A DNA stretch of 64,000 nucleotides, taken from the IMG/VR virus record IMGVR_UViG_3300030202_003189, positions 1 through 64,000 of that record; one strand, written 5' to 3'. The notes beneath the pieces were generated by a model. It made no database searches. It saw nothing but the letters and a program-made list of their open reading frames with translations, and had not been told where the DNA came from. Positions 3,720 to 41,717 of this stretch are shown one piece after another (positions within the stretch are counted from its first letter, which is position 1; every line of letters starts with the position of its first letter). The position numbers were made by a program, and so were the translations under genes.

Positions 3720-4014
3720 AAAAACAAAAGAGGAAATATGGCACGAGAATGAAGCCAGAAAATTTCTAGGAGATGTGGAGGAAGAAGGGAAAATATATCC
3801 TGAACAAACTGACCCAGCAACATTAAAGTCTAAATATTCTGCCAAAAATCCTTATGGAGAAGAGATGTTTAATAAAGAAGATTTCTTAGTGAAAGACCCA
3901 ACAAAAGAGGTACCACAGGAGGAATACATAAAAATAAAGAAATCCTGGTTAGAAGGGTTAAGAGATTTTGATACTTGGACAAAGTGGAAAAACGGTTTAA
4001 TAGAATATAAATAA
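3703..4014 (+). CDS. Hypothetical protein
   Basis: 103-aa ORF, coupled to the downstream gene. Confidence 0.75.
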   Translation: MEDINKKTKEEIWHENEARKFLGDVEEEGKIYPEQTDPATLKSKYSAKNPYGEEMFNKEDFLVKDPTKEVPQEEYIKIKKSWLEGLRDFDTWTKWKNGLIEYK

Positions 4015-4595
4015 TGGAGTTAGTAATAAAAAGTGATTGGTTATATGTAATGGACAATGTTCTCACATCTGAAGAATGTAAAGAATTAATAGAAATTGCA
4101 GAACCAACCTTAGAAGACTCTACTACTGTAGGGACAGTAATAAAGGGTTATAGAACCAGTTCAAATACCTACATTTCTAAAGAAATAGATAACAAAGTAA
4201 TCCAAGCCACGAACTTAATTACCCAAGTACTAACTGAGTTACCGACTGAAAATCAAGAAGATATGTGTATTGTAAAGTATCGAGAAGGAGAAGAATATAA
4301 AAAACATCGTGATTATATGGTTGATAACCAAACAGAGGAAGGCAAGGCAGAAATGGCTAGAGGAGGAGATAGAGCGTTTACTGTAATGTTTTATCTTAAT
4401 GACGATTTTGAAGAAGGTGGTACATTATTTGTAACACCTAATATAGAAGTAAAACCTAAGACAGGTCGATGTGTAATATGGAAAAACTATATTGATGGTA
4501 AACCTAACACCAAATCTATGCACGCGGGGTTACCAATTAAAAAAGGTATAAAATATATAGGAGTAAAATGGGTGAGACAAAATAAATTTATTTAA
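4014..4595 (+). CDS. 2OG-Fe(II) oxygenase, prolyl 4-hydroxylase-like
   Basis: RTSSNT, YKKHRD (HxD), FYLND..EGGT, SMHAG (distal His), GIKY (2OG-binding Lys typical of P4H). Confidence 0.88.
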   Translation: MELVIKSDWLYVMDNVLTSEECKELIEIAEPTLEDSTTVGTVIKGYRTSSNTYISKEIDNKVIQATNLITQVLTELPTENQEDMCIVKYREGEEYKKHRDYMVDNQTEEGKAEMARGGDRAFTVMFYLNDDFEEGGTLFVTPNIEVKPKTGRCVIWKNYIDGKPNTKSMHAGLPIKKGIKYIGVKWVRQNKFI

Positions 4596-4596
4596 G

Positions 4597-4770
4597 ATGA
4601 AAAAAATAATAACGAATATCTGGGCATGGTTTACGGCAATATTTTTAATAATAGATTTTCTTCTTATTGCTTTTTTATTTACTATAATTTTAGTAGTTTT
4701 GTTATCACCATTAGTAATATTAATTGGTGTACCTATGTTAATTAATGTTATCTGGAAAAAAAAGTATTAA
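4597..4770 (+). CDS. Small membrane protein (57 aa, not in ORF track)
   Basis: MKKIITNIWAWFTAIFLIIDFLL...VIWKKKY; long hydrophobic stretch. Confidence 0.6.
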   Translation: MKKIITNIWAWFTAIFLIIDFLLIAFLFTIILVVLLSPLVILIGVPMLINVIWKKKY

Positions 4771-4793
4771 ACTAAATAAAAATAATAGATAAG

Positions 4794-4991
4794 ATGGGAC
4801 ATTGGGAAGATTTGTGGTATGAGATACATGATTCAATAGAACGTGAAGGACTTACAAAAGAGTTCGAAGAACAATTAAAAAAGATGACAAACCAAGATAA
4901 ACATAAACACCTAGACACTAGAGATAAATGGTCCTATGCTTGTACAAAAGTAATTAACAACAAAAGAAAAGAAGTTAATAAAGATGAATAA
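4794..4991 (+). CDS. Hypothetical protein
   Basis: 65-aa ORF in operon. Confidence 0.75.
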   Translation: MGHWEDLWYEIHDSIEREGLTKEFEEQLKKMTNQDKHKHLDTRDKWSYACTKVINNKRKEVNKDE

Positions 4992-5367
4992 AAGTAATCA
5001 TAATAGACGTAGAGCGTTAGAGAGTAAGTTGATTAAGAAATCAGATACCTATCCAGGTTACTATAAATACATGATAACTATTGGGGAAAAAGATGGAACA
5101 ACTCATACACGACCATGTTATGGTAAGGATATGCAGGATGCTTTAAGTAGACTTATAAATAAAGAAAGAACTGTTAGGGTTGAAAAGAAAGTAATGAACA
5201 ATCCCTTTCTATTTTTCTTAGGTTGGTTATTAATGATGGGTTGGCCACTTATGTTGGGGTTTGAAACCTCAGCAACACCATGGTTTATAGTTTATGGTTT
5301 TATAGGTATAATAGGTTTAGTAATGATAGGAACCTGGTGGAACAGCTATATAAATAGAGGAGAGTAA
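4984..5367 (+). CDS. Hypothetical membrane protein (two C-terminal TM helices)
   Basis: 127 aa, hydrophobic C-terminal half. Confidence 0.75.
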   Translation: MNKSNHNRRRALESKLIKKSDTYPGYYKYMITIGEKDGTTHTRPCYGKDMQDALSRLINKERTVRVEKKVMNNPFLFFLGWLLMMGWPLMLGFETSATPWFIVYGFIGIIGLVMIGTWWNSYINRGE

Positions 5368-5423
5368 AATATCAATAATTCTCAGAAGGAGTTATTGTGT
5401 AAACAAACGATAAAATAAAACAA

Positions 5424-6086
5424 ATGAACAACGAATTTAACAAATATGCAATAGGACACGCGGGGATATCCTCATCAGTTCTAAATGATTACCAAAATAG
5501 TGCAACCCCTTACATACTAGAAGAGAGACAATTAAGAGTCACACAGATGGACATATTCTCAAGACTAATGATGGATAGGATTATCTGGATACCTGGACCA
5601 ATTACTGAAGTAACAGGGGTAATCGTACAGGCTCAACTAATGTTTCTAGACACCGCAGATAAGAAAGACATTACTTTACATATAGATTCACCAGGTGGGT
5701 CAGTAAAGGCAGGTTTAGGTATTGTGGATGTTATGGAGTATATTAAATGTGATGTAGCAACTGTAAATACAGGAATGGCTGCCTCGATGGGGTCAGTTTT
5801 ATTGGCTGCAGGTACTAAAGGTAAAAGATCCTCTTTAAGATTCAGTAGAACAATGTTACACCAATCCAGTGGAGGGGCAGTTGGTAATATACAAGACGCA
5901 AGGATTACAATGGACGAATGGGAAAAGACAAATAAGTTATTGTTTGAACTCCTTGGTAGGTATTGTAAGAAAACAGCGAAAAGAGTAGAGAAAGATGCGG
6001 CAAGAGACTTATGGTTAAGTGCTGAAGAATCTTTAGACTACGGAATAATAGATGAAGTAATAAAAAGTAAAAAAACAAAAAAATGA
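5424..6086 (+). CDS. clpP: ATP-dependent Clp protease proteolytic subunit
   Basis: DIFSRLMMDRII, IDSPGGSV, AASMGS (Ser), MLHQ (His), RDLWLS (Asp). Confidence 0.97.
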   Translation: MNNEFNKYAIGHAGISSSVLNDYQNSATPYILEERQLRVTQMDIFSRLMMDRIIWIPGPITEVTGVIVQAQLMFLDTADKKDITLHIDSPGGSVKAGLGIVDVMEYIKCDVATVNTGMAASMGSVLLAAGTKGKRSSLRFSRTMLHQSSGGAVGNIQDARITMDEWEKTNKLLFELLGRYCKKTAKRVEKDAARDLWLSAEESLDYGIIDEVIKSKKTKK

Positions 6087-40291: not shown

Positions 40292-40302
40292 AAAAAACAA
40301 AA

Positions 40303-40494
40303 ATGGATTCAATTACATGTTATATTAAATGCTATGGAGGTTATCTATTAGCAGTAGGAGCAGGATGTACATTTGGTACGAGCTTATTATGGGGTACAGC
40401 GTTATTAGCCGCGGCTGGATATTGGGGATGGCAAGTTATTTGTCCTTGTAAACCATGTAAAAGTGGTGAAGGGGCTTGTTGTAAAACAAAGTAA
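40303..40494 (+). CDS. Small two-TM protein with Cys-rich tail
   Basis: CPCKPC..CCK C-terminus. Confidence 0.75.
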   Translation: MDSITCYIKCYGGYLLAVGAGCTFGTSLLWGTALLAAAGYWGWQVICPCKPCKSGEGACCKTK

Positions 40495-40495
40495 G

Positions 40496-40699
40496 ATGAC
40501 GTTAGCGAGAATGTTAATAACCTTTGGTGTGCTATTAATGTTTACTTGGTTGATATATCTTATATTCTTTGAAGAGGTTGCGGGAACTACCCGTGACCTT
40601 CTCTTTATTTTAGTTGGGGGATTTTTAAGTTCCTTCCAAAACATTATAGATTATTGGTTTAAGAAAGAGAAGAAAGAACAAAGGGAATGTAAAGAATGA
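40496..40699 (+). CDS. Two-TM holin-like membrane protein
   Basis: Start at MTLARMLITF; two TM helices, IIDYWF, charged tail. Confidence 0.55.
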   Translation: MTLARMLITFGVLLMFTWLIYLIFFEEVAGTTRDLLFILVGGFLSSFQNIIDYWFKKEKKEQRECKE

Positions 40700-40701
40700 T
40701 A

Positions 40702-40709
40702 TATTTATA
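40702..40709 (+). promoter_or_regulatory. Putative phage late promoter TATTTATA
   Basis: TATTTATA-GTAT-ATG. Confidence 0.6.
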
Positions 40710-40713
40710 GTAT

Positions 40714-41157
40714 ATGAAGAAGAAACAATTATTACAAATAATAACAGAAAAAACCAAACGTAAACCTCAACCGGTCAAAGTTAAGTTAGATTTTGATAAA
40801 AATCAGGATGGATCACCAGATCACTATACTAGTGATAGTGAACATTCGAATAAAGAACAAAGTAATGAAACTCCAGATTTTTATTCTCAAAATTTTAATG
40901 ATGAAGGTACAAATGTAAGACCTTTACATAAAAATACAAAAGGGGAAAAATTTAAGAAAAATAAACATACAGGAGATAATCATTTAACTAAAGGTAATGA
41001 TTTTAAGATTAAAGATAGCGCAAAACCTAAAGTAGGTAATGGAAATTGGAGTGGAGATGATCATATTTTTGAAGTAGTTGATGAAATATCCTCACAAATA
41101 TTATATGAGGAGGCTTTTAGAAAAAATAAGAAGTATTTATTAAAAAAGACATTATAA
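40714..41157 (+). CDS. LxE-leader hydrophilic protein
   Basis: QLLQIITEK leader; DFDKNQDG loop. Confidence 0.8.
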   Translation: MKKKQLLQIITEKTKRKPQPVKVKLDFDKNQDGSPDHYTSDSEHSNKEQSNETPDFYSQNFNDEGTNVRPLHKNTKGEKFKKNKHTGDNHLTKGNDFKIKDSAKPKVGNGNWSGDDHIFEVVDEISSQILYEEAFRKNKKYLLKKTL

Positions 41158-41717
41158 TGAAAAAAGAACAGATTTTAAGTGAGGAATTGAATAGAATGAG
41201 ACAACTCATGGGAATGAATGGCTCCCTATATCAAAAACCTATAATGGAAGACGAGTCAAGGGACAAAGGTCATGGTGAGACAGAACCTAATCCAAGAGAC
41301 TATAAAGGAGGGGAAAGAAGTGAAGAATACCGAGCAGATTATGCACATTGGTCCGAACACCAACCAGCATCTCCACCATCTCCACCATCTCCACCGCCAG
41401 CACCGCCGCCGCCACCGCCACCACCGCCACCACCGCCGCCACCGCCGCCGCCGTCACCACCACCTAAAAAAGATTATAGCAATATAACACGACAAGCGAC
41501 TAAGGCAGTACCTAAGAAAGGAACTGGATCAGAATCAGCAGGTTCATTTGTGGCTACAGTAGGGGGAGGAGGAGCTAAAGGACCATCTCGTGGTAGTAGT
41601 AGATTTGGTAAGAGGGGAAGTAAAGCAACAAAAGGAGGAACCAAAAAAGTCACTAGAGGAAGAGCTAAAAAGAATAAAGCAAAAACTAATAAAGGTAAGA
41701 AGAAAAAAGAAGATTAG
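41157..41717 (+). CDS. LSEELNRMRQLMG-leader protein with polyproline rod and Lys-rich tail
   Basis: 17 consecutive Pro, SPPP motifs, histone-H1-like basic tail. Confidence 0.85.
   Translation: MKKEQILSEELNRMRQLMGMNGSLYQKPIMEDESRDKGHGETEPNPRDYKGGERSEEYRADYAHWSEHQPASPPSPPSPPPAPPPPPPPPPPPPPPPPPSPPPKKDYSNITRQATKAVPKKGTGSESAGSFVATVGGGGAKGPSRGSSRFGKRGSKATKGGTKKVTRGRAKKNKAKTNKGKKKKED
41367..41465 (+). repeat. CCA/CCG trinucleotide tract encoding polyproline
   Basis: 41403-41453 encodes P17 using 11 CCG and 6 CCA. Confidence 0.95.

Follow-up and report, generated by a model that had tools for sequence, protein, structure and literature searches.

A collagen-type prolyl 4-hydroxylase and its candidate polyproline substrates in a huge marine phage of Flavobacteriaceae

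The first 64 kb of IMG/VR virus record IMGVR_UViG_3300030202_003189 (here called the window; the whole record of 231,285 b is labelled G000) encode a prolyl 4-hydroxylase (P4H), a cyclophilin, a tRNA-Pro(UGG) and several proteins with long proline runs, which raises the question of whether these parts work together. A preliminary description of the window had joined them into one dedicated route, in which the tRNA would supply, the cyclophilin isomerise and the oxygenase hydroxylate the prolines of virion proteins, possibly followed by glycosylation. Our analysis favored a narrower answer, to which we assign a probability of roughly one in two: the P4H acts on polyproline linkers of phage proteins, the cyclophilin and the tRNA-Pro are general-purpose, and the three features came together independently.

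Record G000 is linear, 34% G+C, with 238 open reading frames (ORFs) and an estimated completeness of 70%; it belongs to a huge marine phage of Flavobacteriaceae with a whole genome of approximately 330 kb. Near-identical DNA was present in marine and seawater metagenomes from ten studies, and the window carries a T4-like portal (62267) and a large terminase, TerL (60430). Marine Flavobacteriaceae are indicated as the host by a type IX secretion sorting domain (PF18962) at the end of ORF 33021–36809 and by the identity of the phage tRNA to the chromosomal tRNA-Pro(UGG) of this family. The 298-kb viral record G001 (93% complete) has 132 of the 238 ORFs in common with G000 at a mean identity of 46%, and the nearest GenBank phages are uncultured and 630–640 kb in size. 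A sister phage is represented by the fragments L108/G021 and G431, neither of which spans the region homologous to 0–20 kb of G000.

The oxygenase described at position 4014 is, as judged by its sequence, catalytic residues and modelled fold, a genuine collagen-type P4H with inferred substrates: a 2-oxoglutarate (2OG)/Fe(II) oxygenase of 193 aa without a signal peptide (ORF 4014–4595, + strand). It matched Pfam family PF13640 (E-value 1.2e-13), and its sequence matches in the Protein Data Bank (PDB) were exclusively P4Hs, the best solved relatives being the enzymes of Bacillus anthracis (2.4e-22), Chlamydomonas (1e-17), human (C-P4H alpha-2, 2.5e-16) and the chlorovirus PBCV-1 (2.7e-8). Across 22 aligned homologues, the Fe(II) triad (H98, D100 and H170, as H-x-D...H), the 2OG-binding lysine (K180, ten residues after H170 and aligned with the KGEKWIATQW block of B. 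anthracis P4H), the YRTSS block and other family blocks were invariant. The AlphaFold2 model (predicted local distance difference test score, pLDDT, 93) showed a double-stranded beta-helix fold. In a Foldseek search with this model, template modelling (TM) scores were 0.82 to 3gze, an algal P4H in complex with (Ser-Pro)5, 0.78 to 5hv0 and 0.74 to 5c5t; ranks 1–33 were all prolyl 4-hydroxylases of the collagen/algal/viral/transmembrane group, and PHD2 first appeared at rank 34 with a TM score of about 0.6 (0.62). No second PF13640 gene was found in G000.

The neighborhood of the P4H consists of host-like auxiliary genes (CDGSH, cytidylyltransferase, ClpP and CorA-like) outside the structural block, and relatives with a P4H of 70–85% identity retain the order P4H, ClpP, cyclophilin, AAA_28. 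In one close relative (loci L109–L112), the P4H is 79% identical and the flanking genes 97–99% (ClpP 99%, ORF 3703 99%), with ORFs 2326, 2565 and 4984 also diverged to 60–67%; the low identity of these four genes compared to their flanks could reflect either mosaic replacement or fast evolution. Among viral contigs, a single-sequence scan with the P4H returned no matches, and a profile scan found 298 contigs encoding a distant relative. No P4H was found in four candidate host genomes, and weak, distant matches occurred in seven of 401 searched Flavobacteriaceae genomes, none of the seven with a proline-tailed neighbor.

The closest non-phage relatives of the phage enzyme, at 40–44% identity, were located on bacterial contigs amid housekeeping genes, and it is their gene context that points to a substrate class. 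Five distinct bacterial loci were compared (L259, L263, L265, L267 and L275); the P4Hs of four are 40–44% identical to the phage enzyme and that of L275 is 55% identical to P0025. In all five, the P4H gene is directly preceded, at a distance of 0–113 nt and on the same strand, by a gene for a protein of 178–204 aa, in which a divergent helical part and a hydrophobic helix are joined to a C-terminal tail that is either a run of six to 13 prolines (P6–P13, a notation used for proline runs throughout) or of the PPSPPPP/SPPP type. This polyproline tail was the sole conserved block among the five upstream proteins, and the outer flanking genes varied between loci. More distant P4H-like genes were without a polyproline-tailed neighbor. 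In a phylogenetic tree the enzymes of the bacterial pairs were sister to the phage P4H group with moderate support (95/78), and the phage P4H is probably of bacterial origin. Because these sister genes are paired with polyproline-tailed proteins, polyproline or SPPP sequence is, by guilt by association, the likeliest substrate class of this P4H subfamily. To our knowledge, a pair formed by a polyproline-tailed membrane protein and a P4H has so far not been described in bacteria.

Sequence of this type is strongly over-represented in the phage itself. The 238 ORFs of G000 contained eight runs of at least P4 (0.73 expected) and five of at least P6 (0.01 expected), with expectations obtained by shuffling residues within each protein; two of the long runs lie beyond the window, in ORFs 65442–67079 (P6) and 145195–146025 (P7). 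The most extreme case is an extensin-like protein (41157–41717, +), recognized by its sequence and its metagenomic homologues, in which an N-terminal tag, ILSEELNRMRQLMGMNG, is followed by a linker with SPP/SPPP motifs on both sides of a P17 run and by a Lys/Arg-rich tail. Approximately 30 informative metagenomic homologues of this protein all have the N-terminal block ILREELxRMRQLMGMNG, a linker of SPPP/SPPPP/PAPRP/PAPK units and a basic tail, so that SPPP(P) repeats of the extensin/hydroxyproline-rich glycoprotein (HRGP) type occur in the phage protein and its homologues alike. P17 is the extreme form: the nearest homologue has P9 and most have P3–P4 between serines. The run had been described as encoded entirely by CCA and CCG, which is correct for the run itself (six CCA and 11 CCG) and does not extend to the whole ORF, with 17 CCA, 12 CCG and four CCT among its 33 proline codons. 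When read directly, neither this protein nor the P4H showed an N-terminal hydrophobic signal.

The other long-run proteins resemble the P17 protein in a short terminal motif, [ED][EQ][LIF]xR[MI][KR]x[LM][MW] (e.g., EELNRMRQLM or EEIKRIKELL), situated no more than about 20 residues from the N- or C-terminus. It was found in eight proteins of G000 (0.05 expected by shuffling), namely those of ORFs 9469–11475 (−), 11553–12713 (−), 17503–20538, 38911–39681 and 41157–41717 in the window and 65442–67079, 145195–146025 and 203415–206612 beyond it. All five proteins with a run of at least P6 carry it, as do several proteins with 16–78 cysteines. For ORFs 11553 and 38911, runs of P6–P7 had been described; the former (11553–12713, −) indeed encodes a Cys-rich protein with P6, a PPP run and the C-terminal tag DEISRIKELF, and the latter (38911–39681, +) has P8 instead, in a Cys-rich protein with the C-terminal tag EEIKRIKELL. 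The GTG start listed for ORF 11553–12713 is doubtful, an internal ATG near 12575 being more likely, and the close relative L109 has a hypervariable counterpart (43% identity over 60 aa). Further bearers of the motif are a protein of 1011 aa with 78 cysteines, three PPP runs and the C-terminal tag EEFSRMKTIW (17503–20538, +) and a Cys-rich protein of 668 aa with the N-terminal tag EELNRGRTLM and no proline run (9469–11475, −). The motif also occurs in the sister fragments G021 and G431 and is rare in G001 and in a second family-level relative, G002. As judged by sequence, it resembles a docking or targeting tag common to these proteins, and since all five proteins with at least P6 share it, the long-run proteins form one class, which combines a tag at one terminus with a rigid spacer and frequently also with a Cys-rich domain.

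Two further proline-rich proteins belong in this context. A conserved protein of the packaging and head block (55946–57208, +), with TerL and the portal just downstream, contains a variable linker with five PTPAG[KR] units, in agreement with the PTPAGK repeats described earlier. Its homologue in G021 has other proline-rich sequence in this place, and those in G001 and G002 have an acidic D/E/M linker with 1.8–2.7% proline. The homologue of ORF 145195 in G431 has four runs of P5–P7. Within the sub-group, the composition of the linkers is thus kept, as far as can be read from sequence, and the exact runs are not. The second is a small ORF 1.2 kb upstream of the P4H (2565–2810, +), whose product of 81 aa is by fraction the most proline-rich of the genome (18.5%) and is a candidate P4H substrate; its C-terminus, K[IV]PPSPGSPPEIIC, is conserved in the P4H-bearing relatives L109 and L262, and counterparts were called by gene callers in L109, L110 and L112. 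Collagen-like Gly-X-Y repeats, which could have served as P4H substrates, were not found in G000. P4H and proline-repeat protein genes are thus present together in one viral genome, and the P4H-less relatives G001 and G002 have no stretch with at least nine prolines in 20 residues, compared to two to three each in G000, G021 and G431.

The cyclophilin, described at 6083 as part of the route, was readily confirmed as a cyclophilin-type peptidyl-prolyl isomerase (6083–6568, +; PF00160 with an E-value of 5.8e-40 and 137.6 bits against a cut-off of 21.7; PDB 2mvz with 4.9e-41). The catalytic motifs FHRVIPGF.AQGG, GGSQFF and GNHTCFG align to 2mvz; the protein is a normal, probably active cyclophilin. 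Its membership in a proline route found no support in its distribution. Cyclophilin relatives are found across the wider phage group and are encoded in 135 viral contigs; at none of 80 loci examined was a P4H or a tRNA-Pro located within 10 kb, and P4H was missing from 20 whole records of relatives, among which four have a completeness of 90% or more. In the window the gene adjoins a ClpP protease subunit (5424–6086, +; PF00574 with 4.7e-57, and NCBIfam ClpP models), and in the relatives L069 and L074 it adjoins a homologue of the ClpC-like unfoldase. The latter is present in the window as a full-length ClpC/ClpA-like AAA+ protein, the ClpP partner (51507–53960, −; Clp_N, AAA, AAA_lid_9, AAA_2, UVR and ClpB_D2-small domains; phrog_4871), so the phage encodes a Clp protease system of its own. 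The simplest reading is that the cyclophilin serves general protein folding and quality control alongside the phage ClpC/ClpP.

The tRNA-Pro(UGG) (15995–16070, −) had been described as the only tRNA of the window, and ARAGORN confirmed this not only for the window but for all 231,285 b of the record. It is identical over 76 of 76 positions to the chromosomal gene in 117 of 120 retrieved Flavobacteriaceae contigs and would therefore add dosage only, with no new decoding ability. The identical tRNA-Pro also occurs in unrelated AT-rich viral contigs, within clusters that include Arg(UCU), Leu(UAA), Ile(UAU) and Lys(UUU), i.e., tRNAs for A-ending codons; one such phage, G025, has 12 tRNAs and neither a cyclophilin, a P4H orthologue nor a run longer than P5. 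An origin of the tRNA as integration remnant or host contamination could be ruled out, as four of six other viral contigs with this tRNA have, next to it, a homologue of the neighboring phage ORF 15758–15994. Between the phages that share the tRNA, this ORF is 46–50% identical, while the tRNA stays 100% identical to that of the host, which indicates either strong constraint or repeated re-acquisition of the tRNA.

Codon usage fits this picture of general supply. Proline codons of G000 are CCA (54%), CCT (33%), CCG (7%) and CCC (6%). In a sample of likely-host genes the CCA share is 43% and proline makes up 3.2% of residues, vs. 4.3% in the phage; the higher CCA share and the higher proline fraction together correspond to an approximately 1.7-fold higher CCA demand per codon. 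The comparison of proline codon usage with the host thus did reveal a raised demand, though not one residing in the runs, since runs of at least three hold only 80 of 3197 proline codons (2.5%). Like other phage tRNAs that offset host codon differences, this one reads the commonest proline codon of the phage, CCA; unlike the usual phage tRNA clusters, it was recovered here as a single tRNA that is fully host-identical. A dedicated polyproline supply, as first proposed, is not what these observations suggest. Ribosomes stall on polyproline since the peptide bond forms slowly there, and it is EF-P rather than tRNA supply that relieves this; the suggestion that a phage EF-P might be found elsewhere in the genome was not borne out in the recovered 231 kb: the EF-P profile (PF01132), which matched 10 of 14 control genomes, found none in this approximately 70% complete record.

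Taken together, the cytoplasmic P4H would most likely hydroxylate prolines in polyproline-II linkers of phage proteins, with the SPPP/P17 protein 41157, the other proteins bearing the terminal tag and the small PPSPGSPP protein 2565 as candidate substrates. Hydroxylation would stiffen or mark these linkers, both the substrates and the effect being inferred. The cyclophilin would work with the phage ClpP and ClpC as general folding and quality-control equipment, and the tRNA-Pro(UGG), as a host-identical extra copy, would raise CCA/CCG decoding across all phage genes and not in the runs in particular. Linker hydroxylation is plausible because of the P4H class, the polyproline pairing in five of five bacterial loci and the SPPP/PAPK-type linker common to the P17 family. 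A bolder version, which we regard as tentative, holds that the phage makes hydroxyproline-containing extensin-like proteins, in that a P4H captured from the bacterial pair hydroxylates the SPPP/polyproline linkers of proteins sharing a terminal docking tag. If true, this would be a protein modification system of a kind so far undescribed both in phages and in Bacteroidota-type bacteria.

Several observations weigh against linker hydroxylation or limit how far it can be taken. The assignment of P4H substrates draws on guilt by association and on composition. Close P4H-bearing relatives lack runs of at least P4 in loci that reach about 10 kb downstream at most, and the Cys-rich genes there are hypervariable. 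The long runs themselves are not conserved, as in the L108/G021 homologue of ORF 41157 the P17 run is replaced by (PK)n/(PPAPK)n. Proline-rich ORFs lay within 10 kb in four of 80 diverse viral P4H-like loci and in four of 80 cyclophilin-centered control loci, i.e., without enrichment. P4H searches of the sister fragments G021 and G431 were empty, but these fragments do not cover the P4H region (0–20 kb of G000), and the association of P4H with polyproline across relatives, which comes from very few independent events, is suggestive. A complex prediction for the P4H with residues 60–112 of the P17 protein (score 0.23, mark 0.32) decides neither way. The incomplete record means that the statements of a single tRNA and of no EF-P hold for the recovered part. 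Finally, P17 uses solely CCA and CCG although CCG is rare genome-wide (6.9%), which fits the earlier tRNA idea as a small point in its favor and is not fully explained; the pattern may also stem from transitions in an expanding CCR tract.

The single dedicated route of tRNA-Pro, cyclophilin and P4H, followed by glycosylation of proline-run virion proteins, is improbable when judged as a whole. It can claim that every part is present in one genome, that G000 has P4H, tRNA-Pro and long runs and G001 and G002 have none of the three, that P4H, ClpP and cyclophilin stay linked where the P4H is 70–85% identical, that the P17 codons are exclusively CCA and CCG, and that GT2 glycosyltransferase genes lie elsewhere in the genome, at about 81.5 and 95.6–96.7 kb. 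Nothing ties these GT2 genes to hydroxyproline, however, and the cyclophilin is widespread without the other parts, just as the host-identical tRNA is also carried by unrelated phages that lack P4H, cyclophilin and long runs. The small share of proline codons in runs and the lack of an EF-P in 231 kb likewise argue against it, as does general knowledge, given that all prolyl bonds of a polyproline-II helix are trans and that stalling does not arise from tRNA supply. What survives of the proposed route is the link between P4H and polyproline, plausible from the fold match to the (Ser-Pro)5 complex and from the five bacterial pairs; its cyclophilin, tRNA, virion and glycosylation parts found no support.

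Two other explanations concern the target of the enzyme. The P4H might modify a host protein, e.g., EF-Tu or another translation or envelope protein, and thereby reprogram the cell, the proline stretches being fast-evolving spacers that are never hydroxylated. We consider this rather unlikely: the enzymes of the bacterial sister group regularly have a polyproline-tailed protein as partner, the 41157 family stays proline-rich over approximately 30 homologues despite repeat variation, and the best fold match is an enzyme solved with a Ser-Pro peptide. It draws on the closest solved relative by sequence being B. anthracis P4H, with entry 5v7y titled as interacting with and modifying EF-Tu, on the position of the P4H in a host-like auxiliary rather than structural block, on linker sequences that vary freely among relatives, and on the lack of a local excess of proline-rich genes around viral P4H-like genes. 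Alternatively, the oxygenase could serve metabolism, through 2OG consumption or a small-molecule substrate, as proposed for 2OG-Fe(II) oxygenases of marine cyanophages. Marine phages commonly carry auxiliary genes of this kind, which have been considered with regard to 2OG levels and DNA repair (PMC3037559); in line with their frequency, 70 phage records and 298 viral contigs were matched here. A metabolic role is nevertheless very unlikely for this enzyme, which sequence and fold place specifically among peptidyl P4Hs, whose YRTSS and other family blocks are invariant, and whose bacterial relatives are paired with a candidate protein substrate.

Compared to known systems, linker hydroxylation in this phage has its closest analogue in the P4H and proline-repeat proteins of PBCV-1, and its closest relatives by descent are bacterial. 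Both viruses encode a small collagen-type P4H (5c5t/5c5u; TM 0.74) together with proline-rich repeat proteins, and the (PPAPK)n of the L108 homologue of the P17 protein recalls the PAPK-type repeats of PBCV-1. The resemblance has limits: PBCV-1 is an algal virus and the host here is a member of the Flavobacteriaceae, the nearest P4H relatives are bacterial, and the PBCV-1 enzyme is only 26% identical to the phage P4H, with the weakest E-value among the collagen-type P4H chains (2.7e-8). For the PBCV-1 enzyme, PAPK repeats are reportedly good substrates. A second parallel is extensin (SPPPP) hydroxylation in plants and algae, exemplified by Chlamydomonas reinhardtii P4H-1 (2jig, 3gze), which gave the best structural match (TM 0.82) and whose SPPPP substrates resemble the SPPP/SPPPP repeats of the 41157 family. 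Unlike in the plant and algal system, the reaction in the phage would be cytoplasmic, since the P4H and the candidate substrates have no signal peptides, and among glycosyltransferases GT2 genes only, and no Hyp-O-glycosyltransferase, were identified in the phage. By sequence, the best match is B. anthracis P4H (3itq, 5hv0, 5iav, 5v7y), which is likewise a small stand-alone enzyme, approximately 200 aa long and with identical HxD...H...K residues; its PDB titles name collagen-like substrates and EF-Tu, whereas G000 has no Gly-X-Y repeats.

Several other features of the window were observed alongside. The phage carries an envelope-type gene block at positions 33021–40291 of the window, with a counterpart at locus L369 of a relative. 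It includes ORF 33021–36809, encoding a protein of 1262 aa with Cys-containing repeats of about 30 aa each and the PF18962 sorting domain, ORFs 36806 and 39683 with signal peptides and a resemblance to outer-membrane barrels, and ORF 38533 for a secreted thioredoxin-like protein; the matching block in L369 has a TonB-dependent receptor gene. ORF 47474–48547 encodes a glutamine synthetase-like protein (PF03951 and PF00120) with 56–78% identity across the wider phage group, and ORF 42564–46421 a protein of 1285 aa with a C-terminal DUF192 domain, kept in relatives and grown to about 1550 aa in L108 and L369. Further host-like auxiliary genes, at 1677–2336, 6792–8351 and 27225–27965, encode a zf-CDGSH iron-sulfur protein, a cytidylyltransferase-like protein, an AAA_28 kinase-like protein, a CorA-like C-terminal fragment and a PAP2 phosphatase.

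The window also contains an assembly gap (22729–22738) in a repeated module of ORF 22356–23219, an ORF that plays no part in the proline finding. The repeated protein module, MDNWWGNDWGKVADDGGG, broke the assembly, and a 58-nt direct repeat (98% identical) has copies at 22565–22622 and immediately past the gap. At 22728, the contigs from four public runs break off or diverge; past this position, one contig of a probable source run continued for 231 nt and contigs of two other studies for 175 and 183 nt. Because these contigs extend 175–231 nt into the gap, its real length, at least 231 nt, far exceeds the 10 nt nominally assigned to it. In the 30 letters shown, the frame of the ORF goes on with no stop, and it is open to the left and to the right of the gap; the frame probably runs through the entire gap. 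To the right of the gap, a related strain differs in sequence.

Of the unexplained auxiliary genes in marine phages, those for P4H-like oxygenases rank among the commonest, and one of them now has concrete substrate candidates. Two leads are available, a conserved family of SPPP-repeat phage proteins and a bacterial two-gene pair whose first product has a polyproline tail. A lone tRNA or cyclophilin should not be read as substrate-specific, given that simpler explanations apply to both here. Collagen, plant cell walls and one algal virus are the known settings of peptidyl-proline hydroxylation; if the proposed linker hydroxylation is true, this modification would extend to the biology of phages and bacteria.

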